Assembly: GCF_000737315.1 (NCBI RefSeq)
Contig: NZ_JMCB01000030.1
Location: 1-64,000 of the forward strand
Length of the DNA: 64,000 bases
Direction of reading: 5' to 3'
Source of the DNA: Hyalangium minutum
GTDB taxonomy: Bacteria; Myxococcota; Myxococcia; Myxococcales; Myxococcaceae
In this document: positions 7,387 to 32,559 of the stretch, piece by piece
How the letters are laid out: every line of letters begins with the position of its first letter
How positions within the stretch are numbered: the first letter of the stretch is position 1
Notes under the pieces: generated by a model
Database searches by the model: none
Told to the model about the DNA's origin: nothing
Seen by the model: only the letters and a program-made list of their open reading frames with translations
Program-made: the position numbers and the translations under genes

Positions 7387-8832
7387 TCAGCTTTCGGGCA
7401 GTCCTGCCTGCTCGGCGAGGAGAGGGTCCAGCTCGGGGGCACGCAGGCTGCGAGTCCCCACATGGAGCGTGGGGAGGGCTGGGAGGTCCTCGCCCGCCGC
7501 AGCGCCCAACTCCTTGAACCGGCGGGCACCGGGCAGCACCCGCACCTCCAGGGAGCCGACCGTGGTGTTGTAAGCGTCCACGGCCTTGTCCAGGTTGCGG
7601 CCGAGCTCCCCGAAGTGCTTGGCGAGCGTCCGGATCCGATCATAGAGCGTGCGCCCCAGGTCGCGAATCTCCTGGGCATTGCGAGCCACGTTCTCCTGGC
7701 GCCAGCCATAGGCCACCGCGCGCAGCAGGGCAATGAGGGTGGTCGGAGTGGCGAGGATGACCTGCCGATCGACGCCCGCCTCGATGAGGGCCGGGTCTTG
7801 CTCGAGGGCGGCGCTGAAGAACGTCTCGCCGGGCAGGAACATGACGACGAACTCGGGGGCGGAGGGGAACTGCTCCCAGTAGGCCTTGTCGCCCAGGGCC
7901 TTGAGGTGGGCGCGGGTCTGCGCGGCATGCTCGCGCAGCTTGGCCACGCGAGTGCCCTCGTCCTTGGCGTCCATGGCCTCGAGGTACGCCTGGAGCGGGG
8001 CCTTGGAGTCCACCACCACGCTCTTGCTGCCGGGCAGGCGCACCACGAGGTCGGGCCGCAGTCGCCCGCGCTCGCTGGTGACGGTCTCCTGCTGGACGAA
8101 ATCACAGCACTCCACCATGCCGGCCATCTCTACGACGCGCCGGAGCTGAATCTCTCCCCAGCGGCCGCGCACGGTCGGAGCGCGCAGGGCGCCCACGAGG
8201 CTGGCCGTCTCGGCGCGCAGGGACTCCTGGGTGGAGGCGAGCGCCTGGAGCTGCTGCGCGAGGCTGCCATAGGCCTGGGCCCGCGCCTGCTCCAGGTGGC
8301 CCACCTGAGCGTCCACTTTCTCGAGGGACTCGCGCAGGGGCTTCACGAGCTGTTCGATGGAGCGCTCGCGATGGGTGAGGTCCGCGCGGGCGCCCTCCTG
8401 GAAGCGGGAGAGCTGAAGCTGAGCGAGCTCGAGGAAGGCCTGGCTGTTCATGCGCAGCGCATCGGCGGAGAGCGCCTTGAAGGACTGGGCGAGCTCATCC
8501 CGGGCGTGGGTGAGCAACTCCAGCTTCTCCTCCATGGCGCGGCGCTCCTCATGGGTGGCCGCCATGTGCGAGGACAGGCGGACCTCCAGCTCGGCACGGG
8601 CCTCCTGAAGCTGACGGGCACGCAGGCGCTCGGCATCTAGAGCGCGGCGCAGCTCTCCCGCTTCGGCCTCACGGCCTCGAAGACGCTCGGCGAGGGTGGC
8701 GCGCTCGGTCTCCCCTTCAGCCTGAACCAACCGGGTCGCATGTTGGAGGCGTCCCTGGAGGAGCAGCCACGTCAGACCGGCACCGAGGAGACACCCCAGG
8801 GTCAGCAGAGCAAGGGAGAGAACGAGGGCCAT
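7387..8832 (-). CDS. rmuC: DNA recombination protein RmuC
   Basis: N-terminal TM plus coiled coil; [47 protein letters not shown] motifs. Confidence 0.92.
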
Positions 8833-8900
8833 AGGGAGCCAGGACCGCGAGAGCGCTGTGGCGCGAGGACGAGGAAAAGGCTACTCACCAGGTTGTACGG

Positions 8901-10274
8901 ATGGCGACAGAGCTCCACTTCGACTGCGGCACACTGGTCGCGCCCACACTCCCGGATGATGCCCGGTTGCGGGCGCTCTTCCAGAAAGACGCCCGTACGG
9001 GGGTGTACCGGACGGAGGCCTGGCGCTACCGCGAGGTGGTGCTGCGGCTCCGAGAGTTGAAAGAGCCGTACGAGGACCGGGCCAAGCGCTTCGAGCCGCT
9101 GTCGCTGGAGCTGAAGGTGCCGATTGAGCCCTTCCCGCACCAGCGTGAGGCGCTGGAGGCGTGGACGCAGGCCAAGGGCCGGGGGCTGGTGGAGCTGCCG
9201 ACGGGGGCGGGCAAGACGCTGCTGGCGGTGCTGGCGATTGCTCACATCCAGCGGCCCACGCTGGTGGTGGTGCCCACGCTGGATCTGATGGCGCAGTGGC
9301 AGATGGTGCTGAGCAAGCATCTCGGGGTGGAGGTGGGGCTGCTCGGAGGCGGGGTGAATGACCGGCGGCCGGTGACGGTGACGACGTATGACTCGGCGAC
9401 GCAGCAGACGGAGTTCCACGGCAACTGCTTCGGGCTGCTCATCTGCGACGAGTGCCACCACCTCCCTGCCCCCAGCTACCGCTTCATCGCGGAGGGCTCG
9501 CTGGCGCCGTACCGGCTGGGGCTGTCGGCGACGCTGGAGCGCACGGACGGGGGCGAGCGCATCGCCGAAGAACTCCTGGGGCCTCGGGTGTACCGGGCGG
9601 AGATCCGCGAGCTGCAGGGCCGCTACCTGGCACCGTACGAGGTGCGGCGCATCGAGGTGCAGCTGCCTCCCGAGGAGAAGGCGCGCTACGACGAGGCGCG
9701 GGCGCGATACGTGGGCTTCCTTCGGAAGAACGGCATCTCGCTGTCGGCCCCGGAGGGCTGGGCGCGATTCCTGGCACAGAGCCAGCGCAGCGAGGAAGGG
9801 CGCGCGGCATACCGGGGCTATCGCGAGCAGAAGCGCATCGCGCTGACGTCGAGCGCCAAGGTGGACGTGCTGTGGCGCATCCTCGTGGAGCACCGGGGGG
9901 ACCGGGTGCTGGTCTTCACGGAGGACAACGAGACGGTGTACGCGCTGGCGCGGCGCCTGCTGCTGCCGGTCATCACGCACCACACGCCAGTGCCTGAGCG
10001 GAAGACGCTGCTGGCGGCGTTCGCGAGCGGAGAGCTGCCGGTGCTGCTCACCTCGAAGGTGCTGAACGAGGGCGTGGACGTGCCGGACGCGCGGGTGGGG
10101 GTCATCCTCAGCGGCAGCGGGAGCGTGCGCGAGCACGTGCAGCGGCTGGGGCGCATCCTCCGGCAGCGGCCGGGGAAGCGCGCGCTGCTGTACGAGGTGT
10201 GCTCGGCGCAGACGGCGGAGAGCGGCATCAGTGAGCGGCGGCGTCAGCACAGCGCCTATCAGGAGGGCCCGTAA
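8901..10274 (+). CDS. XPB/Rad25-like SF2 DNA helicase
   Basis: LPTGAGKT, DECH, LSAT, KVLNEGVD, QRLGRILR. Confidence 0.9.
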   Translation: MATELHFDCGTLVAPTLPDDARLRALFQKDARTGVYRTEAWRYREVVLRLRELKEPYEDRAKRFEPLSLELKVPIEPFPHQREALEAWTQAKGRGLVELPTGAGKTLLAVLAIAHIQRPTLVVVPTLDLMAQWQMVLSKHLGVEVGLLGGGVNDRRPVTVTTYDSATQQTEFHGNCFGLLICDECHHLPAPSYRFIAEGSLAPYRLGLSATLERTDGGERIAEELLGPRVYRAEIRELQGRYLAPYEVRRIEVQLPPEEKARYDEARARYVGFLRKNGISLSAPEGWARFLAQSQRSEEGRAAYRGYREQKRIALTSSAKVDVLWRILVEHRGDRVLVFTEDNETVYALARRLLLPVITHHTPVPERKTLLAAFASGELPVLLTSKVLNEGVDVPDARVGVILSGSGSVREHVQRLGRILRQRPGKRALLYEVCSAQTAESGISERRRQHSAYQEGP

Positions 10275-11489
10275 GTGCTGACGAGGGACTTGCTCCTGTT
10301 CCGGGTCCGGGAGGGACGGCTGCGCCCTTCGTTCATCAAGCGGGACGATCCGGAGCTGCTGGCCATCGCCCAGGAGCTGATCGCAGAGCTGGACGGTGGC
10401 AAGGGACAGACGCGGGATGACATCGAGGAAGCACTCTCCCTGCGAGCTGGAGCCTTCTCGAGGCCTCGCATCGCCAAAGGTCTGGTGAAGCTGCTGCTGG
10501 ATCGGGCTCTTTTCGACGAGGCCGCAGAGGGCGTAGCGGAGGCCCGCTGGGAGCGATTCCAGCGGGCCTCTCAGGTGCTGCGGGAGCTGCCTCCCGATGC
10601 GACGCTGGAGACCTACGAGTCCCGGCTCGCGGAGGCCCTGCCCGCCCCTCTCCCCGAGGTGCGCGAGGCGCTCTACATCGACCTGCCCGGCAACCGGAGG
10701 CTGCTGGGCTGGGAGGCACTCACCCCAGCCGGAGTGTTGGACCGCTACAACTTGGCGCTCGCGCAAGGCCCGCTGATGGGAGCAAGACGCCTCACCCTGC
10801 GAGCGCGCTCGCCGGAGCTGCTCCGAGTCCGAAAGCTGCTGCGGTGGCTGAAGTTCTGCCGCTTGGTAGCGGAGGTGCGGCGGGACGGAGAGGACTGGGC
10901 GCTGGAGGTAGAGGGCCCGGGAGCGCTGCTCTCGCTGCAGAAGAAGTACGGGCTGCAACTGGCGAGCTTCCTCTCGGTGGTGCCGGTGCTGGAGCGCTGG
11001 GAGCTGACAGCCGAGGTGGAGGCCCACGCCCGGCGCCGGGCCGTGCTGGTGCTGGACCACCGGGACCCGCTGGTCTCCCCGCTGCCCACGGCGCTCGGCC
11101 ACATCCCCGAGGAGGTGGCCACCCTGGCCCAGGGCTTCGAAGACGCGGCGTGGGAGGTGGACCTCACCCCACTGCCGCGCCACATGGGAGCCTCGGGACT
11201 GTGCGTGCCGGACCTGACCTTCCGCCACAAGGAGACGCGGCGCGAAGTGGCGCTGGAGCTCTTCCACGCGTGGCACGCGGGAGCGCTGGCACGAAGACTC
11301 GGCGAGCTACGCTCTCGGCCTGACGCCGGGCTGCTCCTCGGAGTGGACCGGGCCCTGGCCAAGGGCGAGGAGCGCGCGGCACTGGAAGCCCACCCTCAGG
11401 TGGTGCTCTTCAACGGCTTCCCCTCCGCACGGAGGCTGCTGGACCGCCTGGCCCGGCTCATCGAGGAGCCGGCGCCCGCGGGTACCTGA
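10275..11489 (+). CDS. DUF790 family (Bax1-like) nuclease
   Basis: MLTRDLL start, RYNLALAQG, LEVEGP..KYGLQLASF, PDL.F motif; GTG directly follows the helicase TAA. Confidence 0.85.
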   Translation: MLTRDLLLFRVREGRLRPSFIKRDDPELLAIAQELIAELDGGKGQTRDDIEEALSLRAGAFSRPRIAKGLVKLLLDRALFDEAAEGVAEARWERFQRASQVLRELPPDATLETYESRLAEALPAPLPEVREALYIDLPGNRRLLGWEALTPAGVLDRYNLALAQGPLMGARRLTLRARSPELLRVRKLLRWLKFCRLVAEVRRDGEDWALEVEGPGALLSLQKKYGLQLASFLSVVPVLERWELTAEVEAHARRRAVLVLDHRDPLVSPLPTALGHIPEEVATLAQGFEDAAWEVDLTPLPRHMGASGLCVPDLTFRHKETRREVALELFHAWHAGALARRLGELRSRPDAGLLLGVDRALAKGEERAALEAHPQVVLFNGFPSARRLLDRLARLIEEPAPAGT

Positions 11490-11506
11490 GCGAGACCCAG
11501 CGCGGG

Positions 11507-11890
11507 TCAGGTGCCGTTGTTGCCGCCCCGGCCTGGGCGGAAGTTCGACGCCAGGACGCTCAGCAACCGGATGGAGGTGCGGTCCAGCTGGCGAGCGCGG
11601 CGCATGAGCCGGCGCAGCTCGGCGGGTTCGCCGTGGTCCGAGGGCGGCTCGGCCACCCACTTCAGGTCGCCCGAGGGCTTGAGGCCCAGCGCCTCGTCCG
11701 CGGAGATAGAGAGGACGACGCAGAGGCGGCGGAAGGTCTGGATGCTGGGCAGCATGTGGCCGCGCTCCAGCCGGCCGTAGACTTCGCTCGCAATGCCAAT
11801 GCGCTCGGCGACGTCGGCCTGCGTGAGATTGAGGCGCTGTCGGGCGAGGCGTGCTGCCCCTCCGAGCCTGGATGCGAGGGTCTTTTCCAT
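11507..11890 (-). CDS. XRE/Cro-family HTH regulator
   Basis: ARQRLNLTQADVAERIGIASEVYGRLERG..PS. Confidence 0.87.
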   Translation of the reverse strand: MEKTLASRLGGAARLARQRLNLTQADVAERIGIASEVYGRLERGHMLPSIQTFRRLCVVLSISADEALGLKPSGDLKWVAEPPSDHGEPAELRRLMRRARQLDRTSIRLLSVLASNFRPGRGGNNGT

Positions 11891-12015
11891 GTTCGTTAAC
11901 CCAACGGGTTCGCCTATGTCGATATGACTTGCAGGGTTGGCTTCCAAGAACTCCCCGGGTAGGCTTGGTTTGAGGCAACCAAGCAGGTCACATGGCTCAT
12001 GGAGGTGTCTTGGGT

Positions 12016-12408
12016 ATGGCTCGGTATGAGAGGGCGTCTTTCCTCTTCGTGGATCAAGACCCGTGCTGGCTGGCGGCGCTGCGGCGCGCGAGCAGGGACC
12101 TGCCAGGTCCCAAGCACTTCGCGCGGAACGCGGAGGAGGCCCTGACGCTGGTCTGGGTCCACGAGCCCGAGGTGGTGGTGAGCGGCTACACCCTGCCCGA
12201 GGGGGATGGGCTGAGCCTGCTGGAGCGCATCCAGGTGCTGTTCCCGCAGGTGGCGTGCGTGCTGCACACGTCACGCCCACCGAGACAGCTGCGCAGCGCC
12301 CGGGGCATCGCGCTGGTGGAGAAGGGCGCGGCGCCCGGGCGACTGGAGGCGGTGCTGAGCGCGCTCTGCCCGCCGGAACTCAGCTCGCGGTGGGCGTCAC
12401 GGCATTGA
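12016..12408 (+). CDS. pseudo-receiver domain protein
   Basis: FLFVDQD, PEVVVSGYTLPEGDGLSLL (Asp replaced by Gly); GGAGGTG RBS at 12001. Confidence 0.65.
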   Translation: MARYERASFLFVDQDPCWLAALRRASRDLPGPKHFARNAEEALTLVWVHEPEVVVSGYTLPEGDGLSLLERIQVLFPQVACVLHTSRPPRQLRSARGIALVEKGAAPGRLEAVLSALCPPELSSRWASRH

Positions 12409-12958
12409 GGCTCACCATGGCATCGCGCTTCATCCCGGACTTGAGGAAGTCCTGGATGGCGCGGGCCAGGGTGGTGCCGAGCAGACCGATGAGCGGCAGG
12501 TGCTCGCCGCCCTCGCAGGTGGCCTGACCGGGCTGGTCCTCGGCGTCGGGAGCGAAGCGCTCGTCCCAGCGAACGATGCCGAAGGTGCCATCGCCGGAGA
12601 CAGCCGCGTGCACGAGCGGCTTGCCCGCCTTGCGAGCGAAGCCCGAGAGCAGCTCACGGCTGGCCTTGTTGTCGAAGCAGTCCACGAGCAGGTCCGCCGA
12701 GCCGCAAAGGGCCTCGACGTTGTCGGCCACGAGCTTGACGCCAAAGGACTCGGCCTTCACGCCGTAGAAGTTCTGGAACTGGAGCTTGAGGGCCTCGGCC
12801 TTGTTCTTGCCGATGGACTGCTTCACGTAGGCCTGAGCCAGGACGTTCTTCGACTCGACGCGGTCGAAGTCGACGAAGCAGAGCGTGGCGTTGAGGTTGC
12901 GGCAGAAGATGGCGGCGGTCGAGCCCAGCGCGCCCACTCCACAGAAGACGATACGCAT
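12380..12958 (-). CDS. minimal ThiF/MoeB/E1-like adenylating enzyme
   Basis: GVGALG, DFDRVESKN, KNKAEA, LLVDCFDN..SR; Cys in QATCEGG; no CxxC Zn pairs. Confidence 0.88.
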   Translation of the reverse strand: MRIVFCGVGALGSTAAIFCRNLNATLCFVDFDRVESKNVLAQAYVKQSIGKNKAEALKLQFQNFYGVKAESFGVKLVADNVEALCGSADLLVDCFDNKASRELLSGFARKAGKPLVHAAVSGDGTFGIVRWDERFAPDAEDQPGQATCEGGEHLPLIGLLGTTLARAIQDFLKSGMKRDAMVSLNAVTPTAS

Positions 12959-12969
12959 GGTGGCTCTCC

Positions 12970-13380
12970 TCAGCCGGGTGGCAGCTCGGGTAACGGTTCA
13001 GCTCCAGCGCCCTCGGTCATGCCCGAGGCGAGCCGGAGCAACTGGGTCCACCAAGGCTCTTCGGCAGCCCGTGACTCCTGCCCCTCCCGGTCCCTGACGA
13101 GCATGCCGTCCGGAGCGACCACGGAGAACCGGGGCCGCTTGCCGAGCGCCTGGATGAGCGCCTCCATGGTGGTCTCGTCCTCCTGGGAGAAGGCCAGCGG
13201 CCCCACAGGGTGGCTGTGGGCAATCTCCGCGAGCTGGGCGCGGAGGCCCCAGATGGCCTCCCAGCGAGCCCGGGAGTCCGGGAGTGCTACGGGGCTCGCG
13301 GAAGCATCGCTCCAGAGGATCCGCCCTTCGCCATCGATGAGGAAAAGCACCTCACGTCGCATGGGAGTGCCCTCACGCAT
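12970..13380 (-). CDS. JAB/MPN+ (JAMM) metalloprotease
   Basis: N-terminal Glu (RREV) and HSHPVGPLAFSQED = HxH-x7-S-x2-D. Confidence 0.83.
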   Translation of the reverse strand: MREGTPMRREVLFLIDGEGRILWSDASASPVALPDSRARWEAIWGLRAQLAEIAHSHPVGPLAFSQEDETTMEALIQALGKRPRFSVVAPDGMLVRDREGQESRAAEEPWWTQLLRLASGMTEGAGAEPLPELPPG

Positions 13381-14368
13381 GCCGCAGGATGACGAGGCGA
13401 TCGGTATCGATCGCCTCCTTGATGACGGACGGGAGGCTCTCGAGCGTCACGAGATCGTCACGCGGCGGGTGGCCGAGGCAGATGCCGGAGTCGATCACCT
13501 GAAGGGTCCGCATGTTCACCACGGAGATGAAGCGCTCGTCCTTGAAGGTGAAGATGACCTCCAGGTTGCCGTCGCCCAGGGCGCGGGCGGTGCGCATCCG
13601 GGCACCCGCGGCCTCCAGCGCCAGCTCGGCGCGAGCGATCGCATCCTCCTGGCGAACCCGCCCCCTCCCCTGCCGAGCCTCAGGGACAGCGAGCTGCTGC
13701 GCCTCGACGGCGCGCTGGGCCATCTCAACGACCTGGCGGCGGCGGTTCAGCTCCATCATCTCGCGCTGGGCCAATGCGCGCTCAGCGGCGAGCGCACGCA
13801 AGGCACGCTCGGCCTCGGGGCGCCCGAACTCGGCGACCTGGGCCACGTGGGGCCGCAGTTCCGCGGCAGCGGCCGGGATTCCGAGCCGACGGGCCGCCGC
13901 CTCCATCACGGAGTAGGCGAACGCCGCGCGCAGGGTGGCGGGCACGGCCTTGACCTGGGCCAGATTCATATCGTCCTCGAGCGCACGCCGCACGGACTCC
14001 TCGGCCTCGCTCTCGAACTCGAGCGACTCGAACAACAGCTCTCCGGAGTGCCAGCGCCGAGCCTTGACGGGGGACAGCCGGGGAGGCTCCTCGGCGGGGA
14101 GAAAGTGGACGCGCTCGGCCATGGCCCCATCGCGCACGAGCCGCTCGCCCACGAGGTGCCCTCGCACGGCAGGGCACTGATCCAGGGCCTCAGGCTCTGC
14201 GGGCCCCACGGGAGTGGCGTCGCGGCCCTTGATGCGGAAGGTGTACCAACCTGGGGCGGCGGGCTCAGTGCTGAGCCGCAGCCGCCGCTCCGCGGCATGG
14301 AGAAACGCACCGCCGAGGTACGGCAGCACGCGCTCCTCCTCCTTGCCCAGGAACTTCCGGTAGTCCAC
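13373..14368 (-). CDS. hypothetical protein: N-terminal beta domain, coiled coil, C-terminal DSGICL domain
   Basis: 331-aa ORF coupled to JAB (8-bp overlap); C-terminal VIDSGICLGHP..VTLESLPSVIKEA. Confidence 0.75.
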   Translation of the reverse strand: MDYRKFLGKEEERVLPYLGGAFLHAAERRLRLSTEPAAPGWYTFRIKGRDATPVGPAEPEALDQCPAVRGHLVGERLVRDGAMAERVHFLPAEEPPRLSPVKARRWHSGELLFESLEFESEAEESVRRALEDDMNLAQVKAVPATLRAAFAYSVMEAAARRLGIPAAAAELRPHVAQVAEFGRPEAERALRALAAERALAQREMMELNRRRQVVEMAQRAVEAQQLAVPEARQGRGRVRQEDAIARAELALEAAGARMRTARALGDGNLEVIFTFKDERFISVVNMRTLQVIDSGICLGHPPRDDLVTLESLPSVIKEAIDTDRLVILRHA

Positions 14369-14384
14369 GCCCGTCTCCTCCTGC

Positions 14385-16190
14385 TTACGCCGTAGCGCTC
14401 TTCTTGGAGACGACTCCCGAAGGCGTGAGCTGAAGCAGCGGCGTGCGCATCACCCGCTCGACCCAGCCGGACTGCGCCACGGTGCCCGCGGACACCGGCG
14501 CATCCATGAGCGCCTTGAGCACCCGAGGTACCTGGTAGGGGTCATTGAAGCTGTCGACGGAGACCTCGCTGAAGGGCACCTTGAGCTGATTGGCGCCGCT
14601 CTTCACGGTGCTGCCCCGCGCGTGCGACACCGAGACGAGCATCGCCATGGCCGACACGGCGTAGCCGCACTCGCGGAACGCGCGAGCGAACTGGTCTCCG
14701 GCCTCGCCCGCCTCATCGCCCACGACGATGACAATCAGCCGGGCGGTGGGGGGAAAGGCGACACCGGACTGGTGCAGGGCGCGCACGGCGGCGGCGTGCA
14801 TGGTGCCACCGCTGGCCTTGATGTCCTTGAGCATGTGCTGAACGGCGGTGCGCGACGGCGCCTTGGGCCGGAGCACCGTGCCCACCGTGTCGAAGGTGGC
14901 GATGTGGAGCTTGTCCATCGGGAAGCCCGCGAGGATGCGCGTGAGGGCCTCCTTGGACTGCTCGATGGCACCCTCCATGGAGCCGGACTTGTCGATGAGG
15001 AACATGACGCGCACGTCCGCCTCGCTCGTGGCCTCGGAGACGGCCTTGCGAGCGGCATTGTCGGCGGCCTCCTCCAGCTTGTCGCGCAGCTCCTTGTTGC
15101 GGACGTTCTTCGCCACGTTCAGCGCGCGCTGATCGGTGGACTCGGCGACGGCCTTCTCCCAGCGGGCACGGATCTCAGGCTCGGCCATGAGCCCCAGTTC
15201 CTCCAGGGTGGGCGTCATCAGCCGCAGGTCCCGATCCGACAGCGAGGGCAACAGCGTCACCATGATGGCGGGCGTAAGCCCCACATCCTTCGGCAGCCGG
15301 CCGACCACCTCCTTATAGGTGAGCTTCTGCGTCTCGATGGCCTCGCAGATCTCCGCCTCGGAGAGCCCGTCGAAGCGCTCGCGCTTCTCCAGCTTCAGTC
15401 CCGTGAGGCCCACCTTCCGGTGCCCGCTCGCGGCCTGCTTCTGCTTCCAGCCGAGAACCTCGAAGAACGCCTGGGACTCGGGCTTGTAGCCCGCCTTGCG
15501 AGCGATCTTCTTGATGGTCTCCTTGAAGCCCGCCTTCACCAGGCCCTCGAGCATGGCGGGGTTCCTCTCGCGGAGCGCCAGCCACTTGGTGGCAGCGCGC
15601 TTCCAGCGTCCGAGCGGCGGCTTCTTCGAGCCGGGATCCGAAAAGCCCGCGCGGCGATTGAGCGCGGCGATCTCCGGCGTCTCCAGCAGCTCGGCCACGC
15701 GGAGCACGCCCTTGGGGGTGAGCATGCGCGTGGACTTCTTCTCGTAGTGCAGGAGCATCGCCTCGCCGATGGAGCGGAAGTCATCGTCGAGGAAGGCCAC
15801 CGAGCCATCGTCCTCGCGCACGGGCTGGCCCGAGCGGCTCTGCACCAGCATGAGCGCGGCACACGCCACCTTGAGGTCGCGCCACTCGGTCTGAGTCAGC
15901 GCGTACGAGGCGAAGTGCGCCATCAGGTCCTGGTTGAGCTGGTAGATCTCCAGCAAGCGCCGGTAGAGGTTCACAGCGGCCGGGACGAAGAGGCCAGGAG
16001 GAACACGCGCGGCGTTGGCGGGGACCGCCGCGTTCCGGCCGCGAGGAGCGGGCTGCCAGACGTTGCGGACATTGAGGCCGGGGCGGTTGTGCCACAAGTG
16101 GGCCGAGGCGCTCAGAACCAGGTCGAGCAGCTTCTCGGCGGGGCCCAGCTGGGCCTCCGGGAGCAGCGGCGGGTTGCGCGGGGTGTTCAT
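14385..16190 (-). CDS. helical domain + C-terminal vWA protein (putative divergent Ro60/TROVE-like)
   Basis: MIDAS FLIDKSGSM, GGT, VVGDE; basic alpha-helical N-terminal ~390 aa; GGAGGGA RBS before ATG 16190; Ro-like call inferred from the adjacent RNAs. Confidence 0.78.
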   Translation of the reverse strand: MNTPRNPPLLPEAQLGPAEKLLDLVLSASAHLWHNRPGLNVRNVWQPAPRGRNAAVPANAARVPPGLFVPAAVNLYRRLLEIYQLNQDLMAHFASYALTQTEWRDLKVACAALMLVQSRSGQPVREDDGSVAFLDDDFRSIGEAMLLHYEKKSTRMLTPKGVLRVAELLETPEIAALNRRAGFSDPGSKKPPLGRWKRAATKWLALRERNPAMLEGLVKAGFKETIKKIARKAGYKPESQAFFEVLGWKQKQAASGHRKVGLTGLKLEKRERFDGLSEAEICEAIETQKLTYKEVVGRLPKDVGLTPAIMVTLLPSLSDRDLRLMTPTLEELGLMAEPEIRARWEKAVAESTDQRALNVAKNVRNKELRDKLEEAADNAARKAVSEATSEADVRVMFLIDKSGSMEGAIEQSKEALTRILAGFPMDKLHIATFDTVGTVLRPKAPSRTAVQHMLKDIKASGGTMHAAAVRALHQSGVAFPPTARLIVIVVGDEAGEAGDQFARAFRECGYAVSAMAMLVSVSHARGSTVKSGANQLKVPFSEVSVDSFNDPYQVPRVLKALMDAPVSAGTVAQSGWVERVMRTPLLQLTPSGVVSKKSATA

Positions 16191-16272
16191 GGGAGTCCCT
16201 CCGAGCGGGCAGTCTCCCCGAAACACGGCCTGGCGCGCGACCCTTTCTGCCGCTGCGGAGTGGAAGAAGTAT

Positions 16273-19603: not shown

Positions 19604-20404
19604 ATGTCAGCCAACGCGAAGGCGCGGCCAGAGCTCAGCAGAGCCCACGTCACTGAGCAGCTCCGCGCACTGGGAGTCCGTGAGGGCGGCGTTCTGGTGG
19701 TGCACACGTCCTTCCGAGCGGTGCGGCCGGTGGAGGGCGGGCCTCTTGGGTTGATCTCTGCCCTGCGAGAGGCACTGGGGCCAGACGGAACGCTGGTCCT
19801 GCCGTCGGGCAGCGGCAACGACGACGAGCCATTTGATCCCCGAACCACGCCCGTGCGGGACGACTTGGGCATCGTCCCCGAGCTGTTCTGGCGTCAGCCC
19901 GGAGTCCTCCGAGGCCTTCACCATTTCGACGGCTTCGCGGCCGTCGGGCCGAGAGCGGCCGAGATCGTCAACGCGCCGCTCAAGCTGCCCCCCTCCGCGC
20001 CGGGAAGTCCGATCAGCGTCGTGCATGATTTGGACGGACAGGTGCTGTTGCTCGGCGTGGGCCATGACAGCAACACGATGCTGCACCTGGCCGAGCTCAT
20101 GGGCGGCGCGCCCTATCGCGTTCCCCACCATTACACGGTGCTCCAGGACGGGAAGCCGATCCGGATCGACTATCTGGAAAATGATCACTGCTGCGAGGGT
20201 TTCTCGAAGATGGACGCGTGGCTGCAAGCCGCGGGCCTCCAATCGGAAGGACGGGTCGGCCACGCACAGGCTCGGCTGGCGCGCGCGCAGGACCTGGTAC
20301 GCATCGCCGTCAAGCACCTGGCGACGGATCCGCTCGTGTTCCTCCATCCCGTAGAGACGGGCTGCGAGGAGTGCGGCGTGGCCCGGGCGAGCGTGAGGGG
20401 CTGA
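19604..20404 (+). CDS. aac(3): aminoglycoside 3-N-acetyltransferase, AAC(3)-IV-like
   Basis: VHTSFRAV, GQVLLLGVGHDSNTMLHLAELM, DYLENDHCCE, FLHP..GCEEC resemble AAC(3)-IV as recalled. Confidence 0.88.
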   Translation: MSANAKARPELSRAHVTEQLRALGVREGGVLVVHTSFRAVRPVEGGPLGLISALREALGPDGTLVLPSGSGNDDEPFDPRTTPVRDDLGIVPELFWRQPGVLRGLHHFDGFAAVGPRAAEIVNAPLKLPPSAPGSPISVVHDLDGQVLLLGVGHDSNTMLHLAELMGGAPYRVPHHYTVLQDGKPIRIDYLENDHCCEGFSKMDAWLQAAGLQSEGRVGHAQARLARAQDLVRIAVKHLATDPLVFLHPVETGCEECGVARASVRG

Positions 20405-20582: not shown

Positions 20583-23500
20583 GTGAAGAGAACGATTCCG
20601 TGGATCGCAGGGGTGTTGATCCTCCTGGCCGTGGGCGCGGTGGTGCCCATGCAGGAGCAGGAGGATTCACCCGTTCCTGATGCTCCGGAGCCCACTCATG
20701 GCACGTGCGCCCGGACCCTCTCCGCCAACGTGGTGGTGCTGGACCAGCCGCTGATGTTCAACCGGCTGGGTGCCCAGAACGTCAACGGCATCGTCTACGC
20801 GCTGACCCGGGACGTCATCAACATGAAAACGGGCCGGCCGCTGACGCAGGGAGGCGCGCCCGTGCCGGGAGAGGTGATCCTGCGTCCGGACAAGCGGCCC
20901 CGGCCGCTGGTGCTGCGCGCCGCCGCGGGAGACTGCCTGCGGGTGCGCCTCACCAACCTGCTCACGCCCGTGGCCAACCCCCGGGACACACCCAACATCT
21001 TCAATCTCCTGCCCTTCCGGATTCCCATCGATGATCAGGTGGCCAGCCGCGTGGCGGGCTTCACCGTGCCAGGCCTGCAGCTGGTCGGCAGCATCGCCAG
21101 CGACAGCTCCTTCGTTGGCACCAACGGCAACAGCCTGGTGCGCCCGGGCCAGACCGCCGTCTATACGCTGCTGGCCCCCAAGGAGGGCACGTTTCTGGTG
21201 ACGAGCGACGGGGCCACCTTCGGAGGCGAGGCGGGCGCTGGCAACAGCGGAAACGGCATGTTCGCGGCCATCAACGTGGAGCCCCCAGGCGCCAACTTCT
21301 ACCGCAGCCAGGTCACGGAGGAGGAGCTGCGCCTGGCCACCACCGGAACGAGCCCCACCGGTCAGCCGGTGATCAACTACGAGGCGGTCTACCCCAACAA
21401 AGAGCCCTGGCTGAGGGAGGGCAAGAGTGGCCTGCCCATCCTCAACATGCTGTGGGGCAAAGAGCTGGTCCACACGGATATCGCCGCGATCATCGTGGGG
21501 CCCAAGCCGGATGGCTCCTTCCCACCGAACACCTATCCACTGGAGAGCGTGGGCAAGCGCAACCCCAGCCTGCCCAACCGCCTGGAGGCCTTCCGCGAAA
21601 ACACCGCCCTCTTCCATGACGAGGCCTCCGCGGCCAACGCCTTCCAGGGCTTCTTCCTGGATCCTGTCTTCCGCTTCACGCTGCAGGGCGTGCGGGACGC
21701 CTTCATGATCAACTACGGCTCGGGAGGCATCGGCTCGGAGATCATCGCCAACCGCCTGTCCGTGGGGCCCATGCATGACTGCCTGGACTGCGCCTACGAG
21801 GAGTTCTTCCTGAGCTCCTTCACGGTGGGGGATCCGGCCATGCTGGTGGACGTGCCGGCCAACCTGGGGCTGGAGGCCCTGCCGCCGGGTGCCACGCCGC
21901 CGCCCGGGACCACCGGGCCCAAGGCCACCAAGGCCTTCTACCCGGACGATCCCAGCAACGTCTTCCACAGTTACACCCGGGACTTCGTGAAGATGCGCAA
22001 CGTGCACGTGGGCAAGGAGCAGCACGTCTTCCACCTGCACAACCACCAGTGGCTGTTCAACCCCAACGACGACAACTCCAACTACATCGATGCGCAGGGC
22101 ATCGGGCCAGGCTCGGGCTACACATACGAGCTCGTCTTCGGGGGCGCGGGCAACCGCAACCACACCGCGGGCGACGCCATCTTCCACTGTCACTTCTATC
22201 CTCACTTCGCCCAGGGCATGTGGGCGCTGCTGCGCGTCCACGACACGTTCGAGGCGGGCACGAAGCTGGCCGCGAGCGGCTCGGGCTTCCACACCGCGCC
22301 CTTCGGCTTGCAGGACGGAACGCCCGCCGCCTCCAGCCGCGCCCTGCCGGATGGAGAGATCGTCGCCGGCACGCCCATTCCCGCAGTGGTGCCGCTGCCC
22401 GGCAGGCCCATGGCGCCCATGCCCGGAAAGGTCGAGGTGGTGCCCAACCCGAACACCACCACGGCCTCCGTTTTCCACCCGCTCAGCCCAGGAGCGCCCG
22501 TGCCGGTGGGCAGCAACGCGCGCGTCGTCCAGCGCGCCATCAACCCCGGCTATCCGTTCTTCATCGGCGGCATCGAGAACACCGTGGGCCAACGTCCGCC
22601 CACGCCTCCCCTGGACATGCTCACCGAGGCGGAGGCCGCAGCGCTCCAGGCCGGCACCAACCCGCTGTTCGCGGGGCGGACGGACCTGGTGACTGGAGCG
22701 GGAGGCTTCAACGGAGGGCTGCCCCGGCACACGCTGGAGGGCGTGGCCGCGGGCGGCGAGGCCCTCTCCGTCGTGAGCCGCCTGGACTTCAACAAGGAGC
22801 TCGTGAAGGCCCGGCCCGTGTACCTCCCCGAGCAGGGAACAGACGTGGAGCAGACGGCCATGCGCTTCCACGCGACGCCCTCGCACCCGAGCACGACGCT
22901 GCTGCGCAACGGCACCCCGATGGCCGGCACCTTCGCCAGCAATGGCCTGCCTCCCTCCCCCAGCGCCCCGTACTTCGAGCCATGCCGGGATGACGCGGGC
23001 AACCCGGTACGCGCGGGCGTGCCTCCGCGCTTCTTCGATGGCTCCGGAGGCCTGAGCACCACCGGCCCTGTGCGGTTCGGCATCGCCAACCCGCGCGTCT
23101 ACAAGGCCGCCAACATCCAGCTCGACGTGGTGTTCAACAAGGTGGGCTACCACTTCTCACAGGAGCGCATCCTCAGCCTCTGGGAGGACGTGCAGCCCAC
23201 CCTCAACAAGCAACGGCCCCCCGAGCCCTTCGTCCTCCGGTTCAACACCTTCGACTGCGGCAAGTACCTGCACACCAACCTCGTCCCCGCGAGGTACGAG
23301 CTGGACGACTACCAGGTGCGCACGCCCACCGACGTCATCGGGCAGCACATCCACCTGCCCAAGTGGGACCTGCCCTCCACCGACGGCGCCGCCAACGGCT
23401 GGAACTATGAGGATGGCACCCTGTCACCGGACGCAGTGCGCGAGCGAATCACGGCCATCAACGCGTTCAACTCCACGCCGGGCGTCACCCCGGTGCCCAC

Positions 23501-26222
23501 GCTGGACGGGCAACTCACTCTCACCGCCCTGCCCCACCCCTTCTTCGGCGCAGGCCCCGGTGGTGCCTGGCTGGGCGCGCGCATCACCCTGCAGCGCTGG
23601 TTCTTCGATCCCGTGGTCAACGTGGAGGGCACCCACCGCGGGCTCGGCAACATCTTCACGCATGATCACTTCGGCCCCTCCACCCATCAGCAGGTGGGCC
23701 TCTACGCCACGGTGCTCACAGAGCCCCCAGACTCCACCTGGGTGCACAGCGAGACGGGAGTGGTCCTTGGGACGCGGAACGATGGAGGCCCCACGAGCTG
23801 GCAGGCCGCCATCCTCACAGGCGATCTGAACGGGGACGGCATCAACGACAGCTACCGCGAGTTCTTCTTGATGCCCGCGGACTTCCAGCATGCCTACGAG
23901 GAGGGCGTCTTCGTGGGAGCCGGCCCGGATGGCAGACCCTCTCCGGGGCTGGGCCCCACCGCGACGACCTTCCGCAACGCGATCGCCCCTCCCCACCGGC
24001 AGCAGGTCAACCCCGTGTTCCCAGACCTGTATGTGAACGCGGCCATCTGTCCCGGCGGCGTGCCCCGGCCGTGCCCGCAGGCCATCTCGGCCGATGACCC
24101 CGGCATGTTCGTGGTCAACTACCGCAACGAGCCCGTCGCGCTGCGCGTCTACGATCCGAACAAGCGTGGGCCGGACGGGCAGCGGGGCACACAGGCCTCG
24201 GGGCTGGGAGGAGACCTGGCCTATGCGCTGCAGACGCGCACGGACCGCGCCATCCCCGAGCTCAACACGGCGCTCGGCGACACGCCCTATCCGGCGCTCA
24301 CGAGGGATATCGGCGCGGGAGATCCCTTCACCCCGCTGGTGCGCTCCTTCGCAGGAGACAGGGTGCGGGTGAAGATCCAGGCCGGCGCGCACGAGGAGGA
24401 GTTCAACGCGACCGTCCACGGCGTGAAGTGGCTGCAGGGAGGCTCCAGCTTTGGCGCCGCACCCAACTCCGGCTGGCGCAATGCCCAGGCCCTCGGCATC
24501 TCCGAGCAGTTCACCTTCGAGATACCCTCGCTGCCCTGGCTCGGCCGGCCCGGCGAGCGGGTGGACCTCGCCTACGACATGAACACCAGCCAGGACGGGT
24601 GGTGGACCGGCGTCTGGGGCCTGCTGCGCACATACAACTCCTCGCGGACGGACTTGTTCCGCCTGCCCAACAACCGCACGCCGGTGCGGCACGGCAACGC
24701 CGACGATTTCTACACCGACAACAGCGGCACCTGTCCGCACGCCGCGCCCGTGCGCACCTATGATGTCACGGCGGTGCTGGCCAATACCGCGCTCGGCAAT
24801 CCGCTGGGCGTCACGCTGGTACCCGGGGATGACTCGGCCACCCAGCATGTTGGAGCGCCGGTCAACCCCAGGGGCGGCACGCTCGTCTACAACCCCCGGC
24901 GTACCGCGCTGGACAACGGCAAGTCAGGCCCGCTCCATGATCCTACCGCCCTGCTCTACGTGCGCACGGCGGACTTGGGTGCCAACGGCAAGCTCCGGCC
25001 CGGAGTTCCCATCGAGCCCCTGGTGCTGCGCGCGGCCGCGGGCGAGTGCCTGGAGATCACCCTGCGCAACCGGCTGCCGGGGGATCTCAACCGCAACGGC
25101 TTCTTCGACGACAACCCCGACCTGGCCAACCTCACCAGCCTCATCGGCGTGGTGAACCGCGACCGGCAGAACCCGCAGGGGGTGACCACCTTCAACAACA
25201 ACCTCATCCGGGCATCGAGCTGGGTGGGGCTGCATCCCCAGCTCGTGGCGTACGATGTCACCACGGCGGATGGCACCAACGTCGGCATCAACCCGCAGCA
25301 GCTCGTGCCCCCCGGCGGCTCGAGGCTCTACCGCTGGTACGCGGGAGACATCCGCAAGAGAGCGCGCAACAACACCAGCAGCGTCCAGCTCGTCGTCACG
25401 CCCATCGAGTTCGGCGGCTCCAACCTGGTCCCCGCCGACAAGATCAAGCAGGGCCAGAAGTCGCTGGTGGGCGCGCTGGTCATCGAGCCCCTGGGCACGG
25501 CGTGGACCGAGGACGCGAACCGGCGCTCCGCGGCCAGTGTAGGCCCCGACACGAACCAGGATGGCCGGCCGGACAAAACCCTCTTCCGGGACTTCGCCGT
25601 GGTGCACCAGAAGCAGATGAGCCACCGCTACGCGGACGGCACGGCGGTGGAGAACGTGCAAGCCGAGGGGATCGTCGCCGAGGACAACCAGGACGCGGGG
25701 CAGATGGCCCTCAACTATGGCACCGAGCCGATGTGGTTCCGCTTCGGTCTGCGGCCGAACGCCCCGTTCGGCAACGTCCCTGGAGGCTACGGCGCCGTGC
25801 CCAACGCCTTCATGGCCTACAGCAACGGCCTGGTGGGGGGAGATCCCGTTACGCCCGTGTTCACCGTGAAGGCGGGCCGGCAGACGCGCCTGCGTCTGCT
25901 CGAACCCCACGGCTCGTTCCGAGGCACCACCTTCAAGTTGCACGGCCACCTGTGGCAGCGGGACCCGTATGTGTGTCCGGGCTCGGCGGACCTGGGGCTC
26001 CCGGGCAAGTGCACCCCCACCGAGGTCCCCTCGCGAGCGCTGGGCCTCAACCCCGTGGGCTTCTATGTGGGCGGACAGGAGAGCGTGCAGCCCTCGACCC
26101 ACTTCGAGGTGTTCCTGCCGAGCGCCGGTGGCGCGAACGAGGTGTCCGGGGACTACCTGTTCCGGGACTACGGGAGCCTGGGCAACATCTCCGGCGAGTG
26201 GGGCCTGCTGCGCGTGGAGTGA
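20583..26222 (+). CDS. mnxG: large exported multicopper oxidase, MnxG-type putative Mn(II) oxidase
   Basis: 1879 aa; signal peptide; HVFHLHNHQW, IFHCHFYPHFAQGM (T1 Cu), QHIHLPKWD..DGAANGWNYEDG, FTHDHFGPSTHQ, FKLHGH. Confidence 0.83.
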   Translation: MKRTIPWIAGVLILLAVGAVVPMQEQEDSPVPDAPEPTHGTCARTLSANVVVLDQPLMFNRLGAQNVNGIVYALTRDVINMKTGRPLTQGGAPVPGEVILRPDKRPRPLVLRAAAGDCLRVRLTNLLTPVANPRDTPNIFNLLPFRIPIDDQVASRVAGFTVPGLQLVGSIASDSSFVGTNGNSLVRPGQTAVYTLLAPKEGTFLVTSDGATFGGEAGAGNSGNGMFAAINVEPPGANFYRSQVTEEELRLATTGTSPTGQPVINYEAVYPNKEPWLREGKSGLPILNMLWGKELVHTDIAAIIVGPKPDGSFPPNTYPLESVGKRNPSLPNRLEAFRENTALFHDEASAANAFQGFFLDPVFRFTLQGVRDAFMINYGSGGIGSEIIANRLSVGPMHDCLDCAYEEFFLSSFTVGDPAMLVDVPANLGLEALPPGATPPPGTTGPKATKAFYPDDPSNVFHSYTRDFVKMRNVHVGKEQHVFHLHNHQWLFNPNDDNSNYIDAQGIGPGSGYTYELVFGGAGNRNHTAGDAIFHCHFYPHFAQGMWALLRVHDTFEAGTKLAASGSGFHTAPFGLQDGTPAASSRALPDGEIVAGTPIPAVVPLPGRPMAPMPGKVEVVPNPNTTTASVFHPLSPGAPVPVGSNARVVQRAINPGYPFFIGGIENTVGQRPPTPPLDMLTEAEAAALQAGTNPLFAGRTDLVTGAGGFNGGLPRHTLEGVAAGGEALSVVSRLDFNKELVKARPVYLPEQGTDVEQTAMRFHATPSHPSTTLLRNGTPMAGTFASNGLPPSPSAPYFEPCRDDAGNPVRAGVPPRFFDGSGGLSTTGPVRFGIANPRVYKAANIQLDVVFNKVGYHFSQERILSLWEDVQPTLNKQRPPEPFVLRFNTFDCGKYLHTNLVPARYELDDYQVRTPTDVIGQHIHLPKWDLPSTDGAANGWNYEDGTLSPDAVRERITAINAFNSTPGVTPVPTLDGQLTLTALPHPFFGAGPGGAWLGARITLQRWFFDPVVNVEGTHRGLGNIFTHDHFGPSTHQQVGLYATVLTEPPDSTWVHSETGVVLGTRNDGGPTSWQAAILTGDLNGDGINDSYREFFLMPADFQHAYEEGVFVGAGPDGRPSPGLGPTATTFRNAIAPPHRQQVNPVFPDLYVNAAICPGGVPRPCPQAISADDPGMFVVNYRNEPVALRVYDPNKRGPDGQRGTQASGLGGDLAYALQTRTDRAIPELNTALGDTPYPALTRDIGAGDPFTPLVRSFAGDRVRVKIQAGAHEEEFNATVHGVKWLQGGSSFGAAPNSGWRNAQALGISEQFTFEIPSLPWLGRPGERVDLAYDMNTSQDGWWTGVWGLLRTYNSSRTDLFRLPNNRTPVRHGNADDFYTDNSGTCPHAAPVRTYDVTAVLANTALGNPLGVTLVPGDDSATQHVGAPVNPRGGTLVYNPRRTALDNGKSGPLHDPTALLYVRTADLGANGKLRPGVPIEPLVLRAAAGECLEITLRNRLPGDLNRNGFFDDNPDLANLTSLIGVVNRDRQNPQGVTTFNNNLIRASSWVGLHPQLVAYDVTTADGTNVGINPQQLVPPGGSRLYRWYAGDIRKRARNNTSSVQLVVTPIEFGGSNLVPADKIKQGQKSLVGALVIEPLGTAWTEDANRRSAASVGPDTNQDGRPDKTLFRDFAVVHQKQMSHRYADGTAVENVQAEGIVAEDNQDAGQMALNYGTEPMWFRFGLRPNAPFGNVPGGYGAVPNAFMAYSNGLVGGDPVTPVFTVKAGRQTRLRLLEPHGSFRGTTFKLHGHLWQRDPYVCPGSADLGLPGKCTPTEVPSRALGLNPVGFYVGGQESVQPSTHFEVFLPSAGGANEVSGDYLFRDYGSLGNISGEWGLLRVE

Positions 26223-26241
26223 GTCTTCCAGGAACCCCACC

Positions 26242-32482: not shown

Positions 32483-32559
32483 TGGTCGGGGAGACAGGAT
32501 TTGAACCTGCGACCCCTTGGTCCCGAACCAAGTGCTCTACCAGGCTGAGCCACTCCCCG
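32483..32559 (-). tRNA. tRNA-Pro(CGG)
   Basis: 77-nt cloverleaf, anticodon arm CTTGG-TTCGGGA-CCAAG, GGTTCAAATCC T-arm, encoded CCA. Confidence 0.97.

Follow-up and report, generated by a model that had tools for sequence, protein, structure and literature searches.

In this study, a 64,000-nt window of the Hyalangium minutum genome (contig NZ_JMCB01000030.1, positions 1-64,000; ~70% G+C), the proteins of which have their nearest relatives in Hyalangium and Archangiaceae, was found to carry a four-gene copy of a conserved five-gene cassette that occurs in myxobacteria and huge phages. The complete cassette encodes a von Willebrand factor type A (vWA) protein, a protein with an invariant cysteine that we call CysX, a JAB peptidase, a candidate ubiquitin-like (Ubl) protein of ~80 aa and an E1-like adenylyltransferase, and the window copy has all of these except the Ubl gene. 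The explanation that we consider best, and hold with moderate confidence, is that the window operon is a Ubl-less copy of this cassette, the JAB, E1 and CysX proteins of which form a cascade acting on the small protein, with the Ubl supplied in trans.

The operon occupies positions 12380-16226 of the minus strand and comprises, in order, the genes of the vWA protein (613 aa, 14385..16226), CysX (331 aa, 13373..14368), the JAB/JAMM metallopeptidase (136 aa, 12970..13380) and the minimal E1-like adenylyltransferase (192 aa, 12380..12958). Since the four open reading frames (ORFs) are closely packed, with a 16-nt gap between vWA and CysX, an 8-nt overlap between CysX and JAB and an 11-nt gap between JAB and E1, and since the G+C content at third codon positions (GC3) is of the coding type in all of them (0.81-0.91), they form a real, tight operon; a scan of the operon for promoters and terminators gave nothing informative. 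The four products end in SATA, LRHA, LPPG and PTAS, and none ends in GG. An earlier note on this DNA, made from the sequence, had reported an E1 without CxxC pairs that has a Cys in QATCEGG, a 331-aa ORF carrying DSGICL without HPN, and the lack of any GG ending, all of which are present, and had proposed that E1 and JAB work here without a ubiquitin-like protein, possibly with an E2-like Cys partner. Overall, its observation is confirmed and its interpretation is in part supported.

The neighbourhoods of CysX homologues and 80 related genome loci were surveyed and screened by tblastn, which revealed vWA-CysX-JAB as the constant core across the surveyed loci. In 13 compact loci, including the most divergent ones (Polyangiaceae, Labilithrix and the actinobacterial Virgisporangium), JAB is directly followed by an ORF of ~80 aa and then by E1, and in 6 further loci this pair is displaced 3-6 kb downstream, so that 19 of the 80 loci have the pair overall. 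The small-protein gene lies upstream of E1 wherever both were found; the two are directly adjacent in cellular loci, and several phage contigs have up to ~2.4 kb of inserted genes between them. The C-terminus of the small protein, RxYLRPK(V/T)PFG, is invariant and is followed by a variable tail of 0-61 aa, several members stopping exactly at the Gly, while the bacterial tails past PFG consist of nothing, A, S, C, CF (the L078 protein ends PFG-CF), AG, AAR or up to 17 residues. Dedicated peptidases are known to mature Ubl precursors that carry a variable tail past the terminal Gly. An exposable C-terminal Gly with a variable tail, as expected of a Ubl modifier, is found in the small protein, and this combination looks like the classic signature of a modifier precursor that would be trimmed to its terminal Gly. 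We therefore call the small protein a candidate Ubl, putatively of the beta-grasp type, a label that comes from its context. Variation inside the cassette was also observed in individual loci: one Myxococcota lineage has its vWA and CysX genes separated by an inserted DUF2007 gene (L005, 7495-8001), four extra genes are found within the cassette of L090, and in L003 the E1 gene is immediately followed by group II intron RNA domains (10280-10896; Rfam RF02001, 97 bits, and RF00029). A locus labelled Comamonas sp. KCTC 72670 (L055) carries a Myxococcus-like cassette with CysX 53% and vWA protein 72% identical to those of the window, and its label looks wrong. A plasmid search yielded one weak and distant vWA match only.

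In the window, no Ubl-family homologue was detected within the 64 kb by tblastn or by a family hidden Markov model (HMM) over six frames. DNA alignment showed that in the window, L014 and L008 the JAB stop codon and the E1 ribosome-binding site are separated by 11-60 nt (the window spacer being 11 nt, 12959..12969), and that L010, the CysX of which is 78% identical to that of the window, has a 243-nt Ubl ORF exactly at this JAB-E1 position, where the locus survey likewise places the ~80-aa Ubl-like gene of relatives. The Ubl-less operons, namely those of the window, L008, L014 and L088 (Hyalangium rubrum), are without that ORF only, and the window operon has thus undergone a clean loss of one ORF. 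A graded loss is seen among window-type loci, L010 being complete, the window, L008, L014 and L088 being without the Ubl, and L001 and L012 being without E1 too. In L001 and L012, MbtH and thioesterase genes stand at the E1 position (11459-12471 in L001), and the flanks are the same as those of the window type.

The situation in H. rubrum is informative as to the source of the modifier. The Ubl-less L088 operon of this species is followed by the same downstream genes as that of the window (receiver protein, XRE-type helix-turn-helix (HTH) protein, DUF790, XPB and RmuC), and another contig (L087) holds an intact 81-aa orphan Ubl. A second vWA paralogue is 5 kb away from this Ubl, and 26 tRNA genes, an HNH endonuclease gene and a ClpB-like/PCRF gene come after it. 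L087 is syntenic with an Archangium gephyra locus that holds all five genes (L091 series: vWA-CysX-JAB, then, past 6 kb of inserted DNA, the Ubl-E1 pair, an array of 14 tRNA genes and HNH). The L087 vWA protein shares 83% identity with its Archangium counterpart and 79% with the window type, and a further orphan-Ubl locus like L087 is L125. With the Ubl-less L088 and the orphan Ubl of L087, Hyalangium thus has two copies, each without genes that the other keeps. In H. minutum, the Ubl is most likely supplied in trans from a second, older locus beside a tRNA array, as in H. rubrum, and the modifier gene of the window was probably lost because the second locus supplies the modifier. Thus, the claim of an E1 and a JAB without a Ubl holds for the unit and for the 64-kb window, but not for the system, as relatives have a dedicated ~80-aa gene upstream of E1 and H. 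rubrum has the same Ubl-less operon with an orphan Ubl elsewhere, a finding that the earlier note had itself named as contradicting its proposal. In the Archangium locus L091, two MvdD-type ATP-grasp genes and a small Inhibitor_I10-like ORF, which constitute a cluster for a microviridin-type ribosomally synthesized and post-translationally modified peptide, are situated between Ubl-E1 and the tRNA array (10896-13141).

The enzymes expected of such a system appear intact. The E1 scores 71.5 bits (E 7e-20) with Pfam ThiF, the cut-off of which is 28.1, and its motifs GVGALGS, DFDRVESKN, GKNKAEA and DCFDN are invariant across 18 family members, as expected of the E1-like/ThiF superfamily, the Rossmann-type ATP-binding fold of which is marked by GxGxxG, an Arg/Lys for ATP and a catalytic Asp (DxxDN). 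No CxxC pair (the zinc site of the MoeB/ThiF type) and no rhodanese domain are found in its 192 aa, and the missing CxxC pairs are no bar to superfamily membership and mark a minimal subtype. Cys148, in QATCEGG (12506-12526), is invariant in the family alignment and lies 52 residues past the catalytic Asp, a position that we take to be comparable to ThiF Cys184 and MoeB Cys187. The best NCBIfam matches of the E1 are the ThiF and MoeB models and its best PADLOC matches are Cap2 models (E 5e-15), and phage homologues are 41-50% identical to it. The JAB peptidase has an intact HxHx7Sx2D motif (HSHPVGPLAFSQED, 13177-13218), as is required for metal binding in the JAB/JAMM family, together with a conserved Glu in PREV, and the motif is kept in all 82 distinct orthologues. 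The window protein itself scores 20.3 bits against Pfam Prok-JAB (E 5e-4), under the cut-off of 25, and some orthologues have a Prok-JAB match in precomputed tables (E <= 1e-5).

CysX has no family match in Pfam, NCBIfam, PADLOC or PHROG. Its AlphaFold2 (AF2) model, based on 96 sequences and with a predicted local distance difference test score (pLDDT) of 90.4, comprises a beta-rich domain at the N-terminus (residues 11-116), a long hairpin of helices (residues 121-253) and a C-terminal part made up of a helix, four strands, a loop with Cys297 and a further helix. The motif around this Cys, D[SA]G[IVL]CL (DSGICL in the window, 13475-13492), is found in 84 of 84 distinct orthologues, and about 20 full-length phage homologues all keep the Cys as well, so that the conservation of the Cys, which the earlier note had proposed to check, is borne out; the His following the motif is not conserved. 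The location of Cys297 in a loop past the fourth strand of the C-terminal domain matches the position of the Cys in UBC-fold E2 enzymes, and the order of elements resembles the UBC core, but nothing else backs UBC membership. The HPN motif is absent, the strand running straight into D-S-G-I-C-L, and a Pfam scan of 28 C-terminal domains at E<=10 returned no match, UQ_con and Prok-E2 included. Foldseek searches of the PDB with full and domain-only models gave nothing below 1e-3 and no E2 or RWD protein in the top 50, with the domain-only C-terminal model having a pLDDT of 81 and the sensitivity of Foldseek being limited for a domain of ~90 aa; the best match of the C-terminal domain was a DsbC/G-like dimerisation domain (E 0.1). 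Likewise, no match below 1e-3 was found in BFVD, and a CysX profile against PDB sequences gave noise only (ARNT PAS-B, E 0.1; KNL1, E 0.7). A UBC fold for the CysX C-terminus was rejected on the missing HPN motif, the missing Pfam and PADLOC matches and the failure of Foldseek to recover an E2 or RWD protein. Thus, of the proposed E2-like Cys partner, the invariant Cys and the element order stand, but UBC-family membership failed the tests run, and an E2-like role of CysX is a reasonable functional hypothesis. The N-terminal domain gave weak OB/S1-like Foldseek matches (exosome Rrp4, E 0.018; a phage S1 protein, E 0.007), which we regard as no more than a lead. In the 90%-clustered database the CysX family has 324 matches, none with a Pfam domain and all of the source-named ones from Myxococcota, and the CysX profile gave 655 matches at E<=0.001 among 1.84 billion representatives. 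One homologue of 398 aa (P0067) contains a tandem duplication of ~68 residues that runs from where the N-terminal domain ends into the first helices (columns 201-268).

The vWA protein consists of a conserved N-terminal domain of ~395 aa of unknown family and a vWA domain in its C-terminal third (Pfam VWA_2, E 6e-9) with the metal ion-dependent adhesion site (MIDAS) DKSGS at 14979-14993. Its mean column identity is 73% over Myxococcota and the actinobacterium Virgisporangium, and the window protein shares 38-42% identity with its phage homologues (E 7e-120), which are 46-60% identical among themselves. Searches of the PDB by phmmer and profile and a Pfam scan of 13 members gave no match to the N-terminal domain, the vWA part alone being matched, and the idea of a TROVE/Ro60 protein is therefore unsupported. 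An identity as a Ro60-type TROVE-vWA protein was rejected on the results of searches aimed at it, which found no TROVE match in the 13 members at E<=10 and no Ro60 chain in the PDB profile search; no Y RNA was detected by Rfam in 7 loci. The window protein ends in LTPSGVVSKKSATA, with a Gly 10 residues before the end, and the ending LTPSG-VVSKKSATA given in the earlier note is present in the sequence. Its orthologues stop ~12 residues earlier, at ...TPLL(K/Q/E)(V/L), without a conserved Gly, and since the tail is unconserved in orthologues, this Gly was rejected as a conjugation site.

The cassette is not confined to bacterial chromosomes. A tblastn search of GenBank phages with the vWA protein identified Virus Rctr197k, a 197-kb Caudoviricetes (E 1e-103), in which the genes for the vWA protein, CysX, JAB, a Ubl precursor and E1 all lie between two tRNA arrays. 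The Rctr197k precursor has 166 aa, with 61 residues past ...RPKTPFG, its E1 has 207 aa, and the HNH protein encoded beside its cassette is 51% identical to the myxobacterial HNH. Scanning IMG/VR with the E1 alignment identified 22 contigs of 55-536 kb with a co-linear five-gene cassette, the Ubls of which terminate in RPK(T/V)PFG, or a motif close to it, plus a tail of 0-61 aa; a viral scan with vWA patterns gave no match, and PHROG has no family covering the vWA protein, CysX, JAB or Ubl. Of 20 distinct viral loci, 17 have same-strand tRNA genes bordering the cassette, as many as 43 of them within 10 kb and the nearest at 88-500 nt from the cassette ends, and three Polyangiaceae loci likewise have the cassette embedded within tRNA arrays of the same orientation. 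At least 10 tRNA genes together with an HNH gene, the mark of tRNA array units, were found at L076/77/81, L087, L091, L125 and the phage loci; the window has a single tRNA-Pro gene (32483-32559), 16 kb from the operon. The cassette is thus associated with the tRNA arrays of huge phages and of some Myxococcota, and its role therefore lies probably in translation or in tRNA-directed conflict. The mention of tRNA in the earlier note proves useful for a reason other than the one it gave, namely that phage cassettes sit inside tRNA arrays.

Some further features of these arrays were recorded. The chromosomal arrays of Myxococcota, with 14-26 tRNA genes (L087 of H. rubrum, 7801-10917; L091, 13819-16245; L125, 1809-4622), include genes for RNase J, for an HNH endonuclease of 180 aa and for a ClpB-like AAA protein that carries a fused release-factor (PCRF) domain. 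HNH genes are also located within or beside phage cassettes, in L095 (9612-9995) between Ubl and E1 and overlapping the E1 start, and in L093 (157-1956), which suggests homing-endonuclease traffic in these arrays.

We propose that the cassette works as follows. The ~80-aa protein would be made with a variable C-terminal tail, which JAB would trim so as to expose the Gly of the invariant ...RPKVPFG end. The minimal E1 would then adenylate this Gly and would probably load the small protein onto Cys148 as a thioester, from which it would be handed to Cys297 of CysX, acting putatively as a functional E2 without detectable UBC ancestry. The vWA protein may serve as the recruiting partner or adaptor, or as the target. 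A broader reading, which we put forward tentatively and regard as possible although short of probable, is that the five-gene cassette is an undescribed Ubl-type transfer system with a non-UBC Cys carrier, CysX, and a vWA partner, which resides in huge-phage tRNA arrays, has been domesticated across Myxococcota, acts on an axis of translation and tRNA conflict, and is split over two loci in Hyalangium. Such a system would, for example, tag host tRNA-targeting defence proteins or translation factors, or service the tRNAs of the array.

Several points weigh against the proposed cascade. Maturation, adenylation, thioester formation, transfer and the role of the vWA protein are all inferred steps. 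The small protein ends in a single Gly (FG), not GG, has no match in Pfam, NCBIfam or, by profile, the PDB, and showed no similarity by hhalign to ubiquitin, ThiS or MoaD. Kinship of CysX with UBC or RWD proteins is undetectable by Pfam, PADLOC and Foldseek. In addition, 47 of the 80 loci are without the small-protein gene and E1 within at least 5 kb, and therefore the vWA-CysX-JAB core may work alone, or the pair may be far off. Lastly, an orphan Ubl in trans is seen in the relative H. rubrum and is extended from there to H. minutum, in which the Ubl search covered 64 kb of the 78.5-kb contig.

The main rival to a modifier cascade, which we think unlikely, is a sulfur-carrier relay. Here the E1 would thiocarboxylate the small protein, which would go on to donate its sulfur, plausibly in tRNA thiolation, and Cys297 would serve as a persulfide relay. 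Thiocarboxylate chemistry of this kind has precedents in ThiS/ThiF, CysO/MoeZ with the Mec JAB peptidase, QbsE/QbsC/QbsD, TtuB/TtuC and Urm1/Uba4; Ubl-E1 pairs serve tRNA 2-thiolation in Thermus, archaea and eukaryotes, and JAB-trimmed sulfur carriers exist, such as QbsE, which ends in GG-CF. The embedding of the cassette in tRNA arrays, the PFG-CF end of the L078 protein, the weak OB/S1-like matches of the CysX N-terminal domain and the standing of ThiF and MoeB as the best NCBIfam models for the E1 all speak for such a relay. However, the small protein ends in a single Gly instead of GG, the E1 is without a rhodanese domain and a CxxC zinc site, the conserved genes of the cassette include none for a PP-loop thiolase, a cysteine desulfurase or biosynthesis, and the OB-like matches are all above 1e-3. 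A sulfur relay also leaves the vWA partner unexplained.

Alternatively, the window copy might be a decaying remnant, its E1, and perhaps its JAB, having been left without a substrate after loss of the Ubl and heading to the E1-less state. The graded loss from L010 through the window, L008, L014 and L088 to L001 and L012, with unchanged flanking synteny, is what such decay would produce. However, the E1 dN/dS ratio (nonsynonymous to synonymous substitution rates) is 0.08-0.13 between the four independent Ubl-less operons (window, L008, L014 and L088), no different from the values obtained against L010 with its Ubl, and the E1 of the Ubl-less operons is thus under purifying selection. In addition, the catalytic motifs are all intact without frameshifts, and an orphan Ubl is present in H. 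rubrum. Because of the dN/dS values in particular, the remnant model is disfavoured, and we regard it as improbable. The suggestion of the earlier note that E1 and JAB act without any Ubl, either with JAB trimming the vWA tail as in the cyclic oligonucleotide-based antiphage signalling system (CBASS) or with E1 acting on tRNA-like RNA as TcdA does, would accord with the lack of a Ubl in the window, the Gly 10 residues from the vWA end and the homologous cassettes inside tRNA arrays, but deserves very little credence, since orthologues have neither the vWA tail nor its Gly, a CD-NTase and an E1-E2 fusion are both missing, the TcdA model is absent among the 15 NCBIfam matches of the E1 at E<=0.1, the E1 goes together with the small protein in every place where the two were found and where the full cassette occurs, and the window has a lone tRNA-Pro gene instead of an array.

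Under the proposed cascade, the cassette works most like the Bil, Bub and Iyer et al. 2006 sets and CBASS Cap2/Cap3, from which it is set apart by five differences: no detectable UBC E2, no E3, no CD-NTase, a very conserved vWA protein and residence in huge-phage tRNA arrays. As in Bil (BilABCD), Bub and the E1/E2/JAB/Ubl operons of Iyer, Burroughs and Aravind 2006 (PMC1779556; PMC10557695; PMC11601596), a Gly-ended small protein, an E1 and a JAB stand together with a separate protein bearing a conserved nucleophile, and both groups are mobile and patchy in distribution, conflict contexts included. In contrast to those operons, the cassette has no recognisable UBC-fold E2, RING E3 or Bub-type serine protease and adds a vWA protein with a 395-aa unknown domain; its E1 is a minimal domain of 190 aa, its candidate Ubl ends in FG instead of GG and matches no Ubl family model, and it is located in tRNA arrays and borne by huge phages. 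CBASS type II Cap2/Cap3 shares with the window operon a Cap2-like E1 domain (PADLOC E 5e-15), a JAB and the lack of a separate classical ubiquitin. However, E1 and the Cys protein are separate in the cassette, CysX has no PADLOC match, the relatives of the window use a dedicated small modifier instead of a CD-NTase C-terminus, and neither the operon nor its flanks were found to encode a CD-NTase, which together with Cap2 and Cap3 defines CBASS type II, or an effector.

With CysO/MoeZ/Mec, QbsE/QbsC/QbsD and TtuB/TtuC the cassette has in common an E1, a small carrier, a JAB and tail trimming to a terminal Gly, and with TtuB and Urm1 a tie to tRNA biology, while it differs from these JAB sulfur-carrier systems in its single Gly and in its additional vWA and CysX proteins; its FG terminus, the absence of a rhodanese or sulfurtransferase and the absence of a conserved biosynthetic neighbour place it outside them. 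The Atg8/Atg7/Atg3/Atg4 system offers an analogy in its modifier ending ...FG with a protease-removed variable tail and in its E2-type enzyme without HPN. However, JAB is a metalloprotease instead of a cysteine protease and no lipid target is indicated, and the likeness is one of analogy, not of sequence or fold. As to genomic context, the relatives of the window cassette have features in common with huge-phage arrays and with the tRNA array units known from mycobacteria and from the plasmids and phages of these bacteria (PMC5966550; PMC12803027), namely 11-43 tRNA genes, the typical HNH endonuclease (51% identity between the myxobacterial and phage proteins) and an RF-1/PCRF-domain gene, whereas the window copy is without an array.

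Genes for ThiF, vWA, JAB and ubiquitin proteins are unmentioned in PMC5966550 and PMC12803027, and PMC1779556 makes no mention of Myxococcus or vWA. A description of the cassette was not found in the literature on prokaryotic ubiquitin, nucleoside triphosphate (NTP)-dependent conflict systems, jumbo phages and tRNA arrays (PMC1779556, PMC7159879, PMC7824862, PMC5966550, PMC12803027), a mention in Burroughs et al. 2009, 2011 or 2012 being possible, and the five-gene cassette is apparently undescribed.

If the proposed cascade is right, the cassette represents a distinct architecture, with a minimal E1, a JAB-matured FG modifier, a strictly conserved Cys protein without detectable UBC ancestry and an extremely conserved vWA protein, and it would be among the few Ubl-type systems borne by huge phages themselves, not by their hosts. 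Bacterial and phage Ubl systems (CBASS Cap2/3, Bil and Bub) have recently become a major theme with regard to both phage-host conflict and the origin of eukaryotic ubiquitination, and tRNA arrays may serve in anti-defence or translation takeover. The location of the cassette in co-oriented arrays provides a concrete link between Ubl chemistry and tRNA arrays. For annotation, the lesson is that a locus read as E1 and JAB without a Ubl can be half of a two-locus system.

Directly downstream of E1 in the window lie an XRE-type HTH gene (11507-11899, minus strand) and a receiver-domain gene (11992-12408, plus strand), the latter convergent with E1 and overlapping its 3' end by 29 nt, and both genes are kept beside the window-type operon in relatives. 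Further on, an XPB-type helicase gene (XPB_DRD, ResIII, ERCC3_RAD25_C) is directly followed by a DUF790 gene (8901-11489, plus strand), the product of which is presumably a Bax1-type nuclease partner of XPB, and a divergent RmuC gene (7387-8832, minus strand) adjoins this pair; the XPB-DUF790-RmuC trio also borders the cassette in H. rubrum and in L001. On the other side of the operon, the window encodes a 266-aa protein of the aminoglycoside 3-N-acetyltransferase family at 19604-20404 on the plus strand (Pfam Antibiotic_NAT, E 5e-53), and a plus-strand ORF of 1879 aa at 20583-26222, which has coding-type GC3 and no Pfam match at 1e-5, is overlapped by the next ORF (25969-28266).

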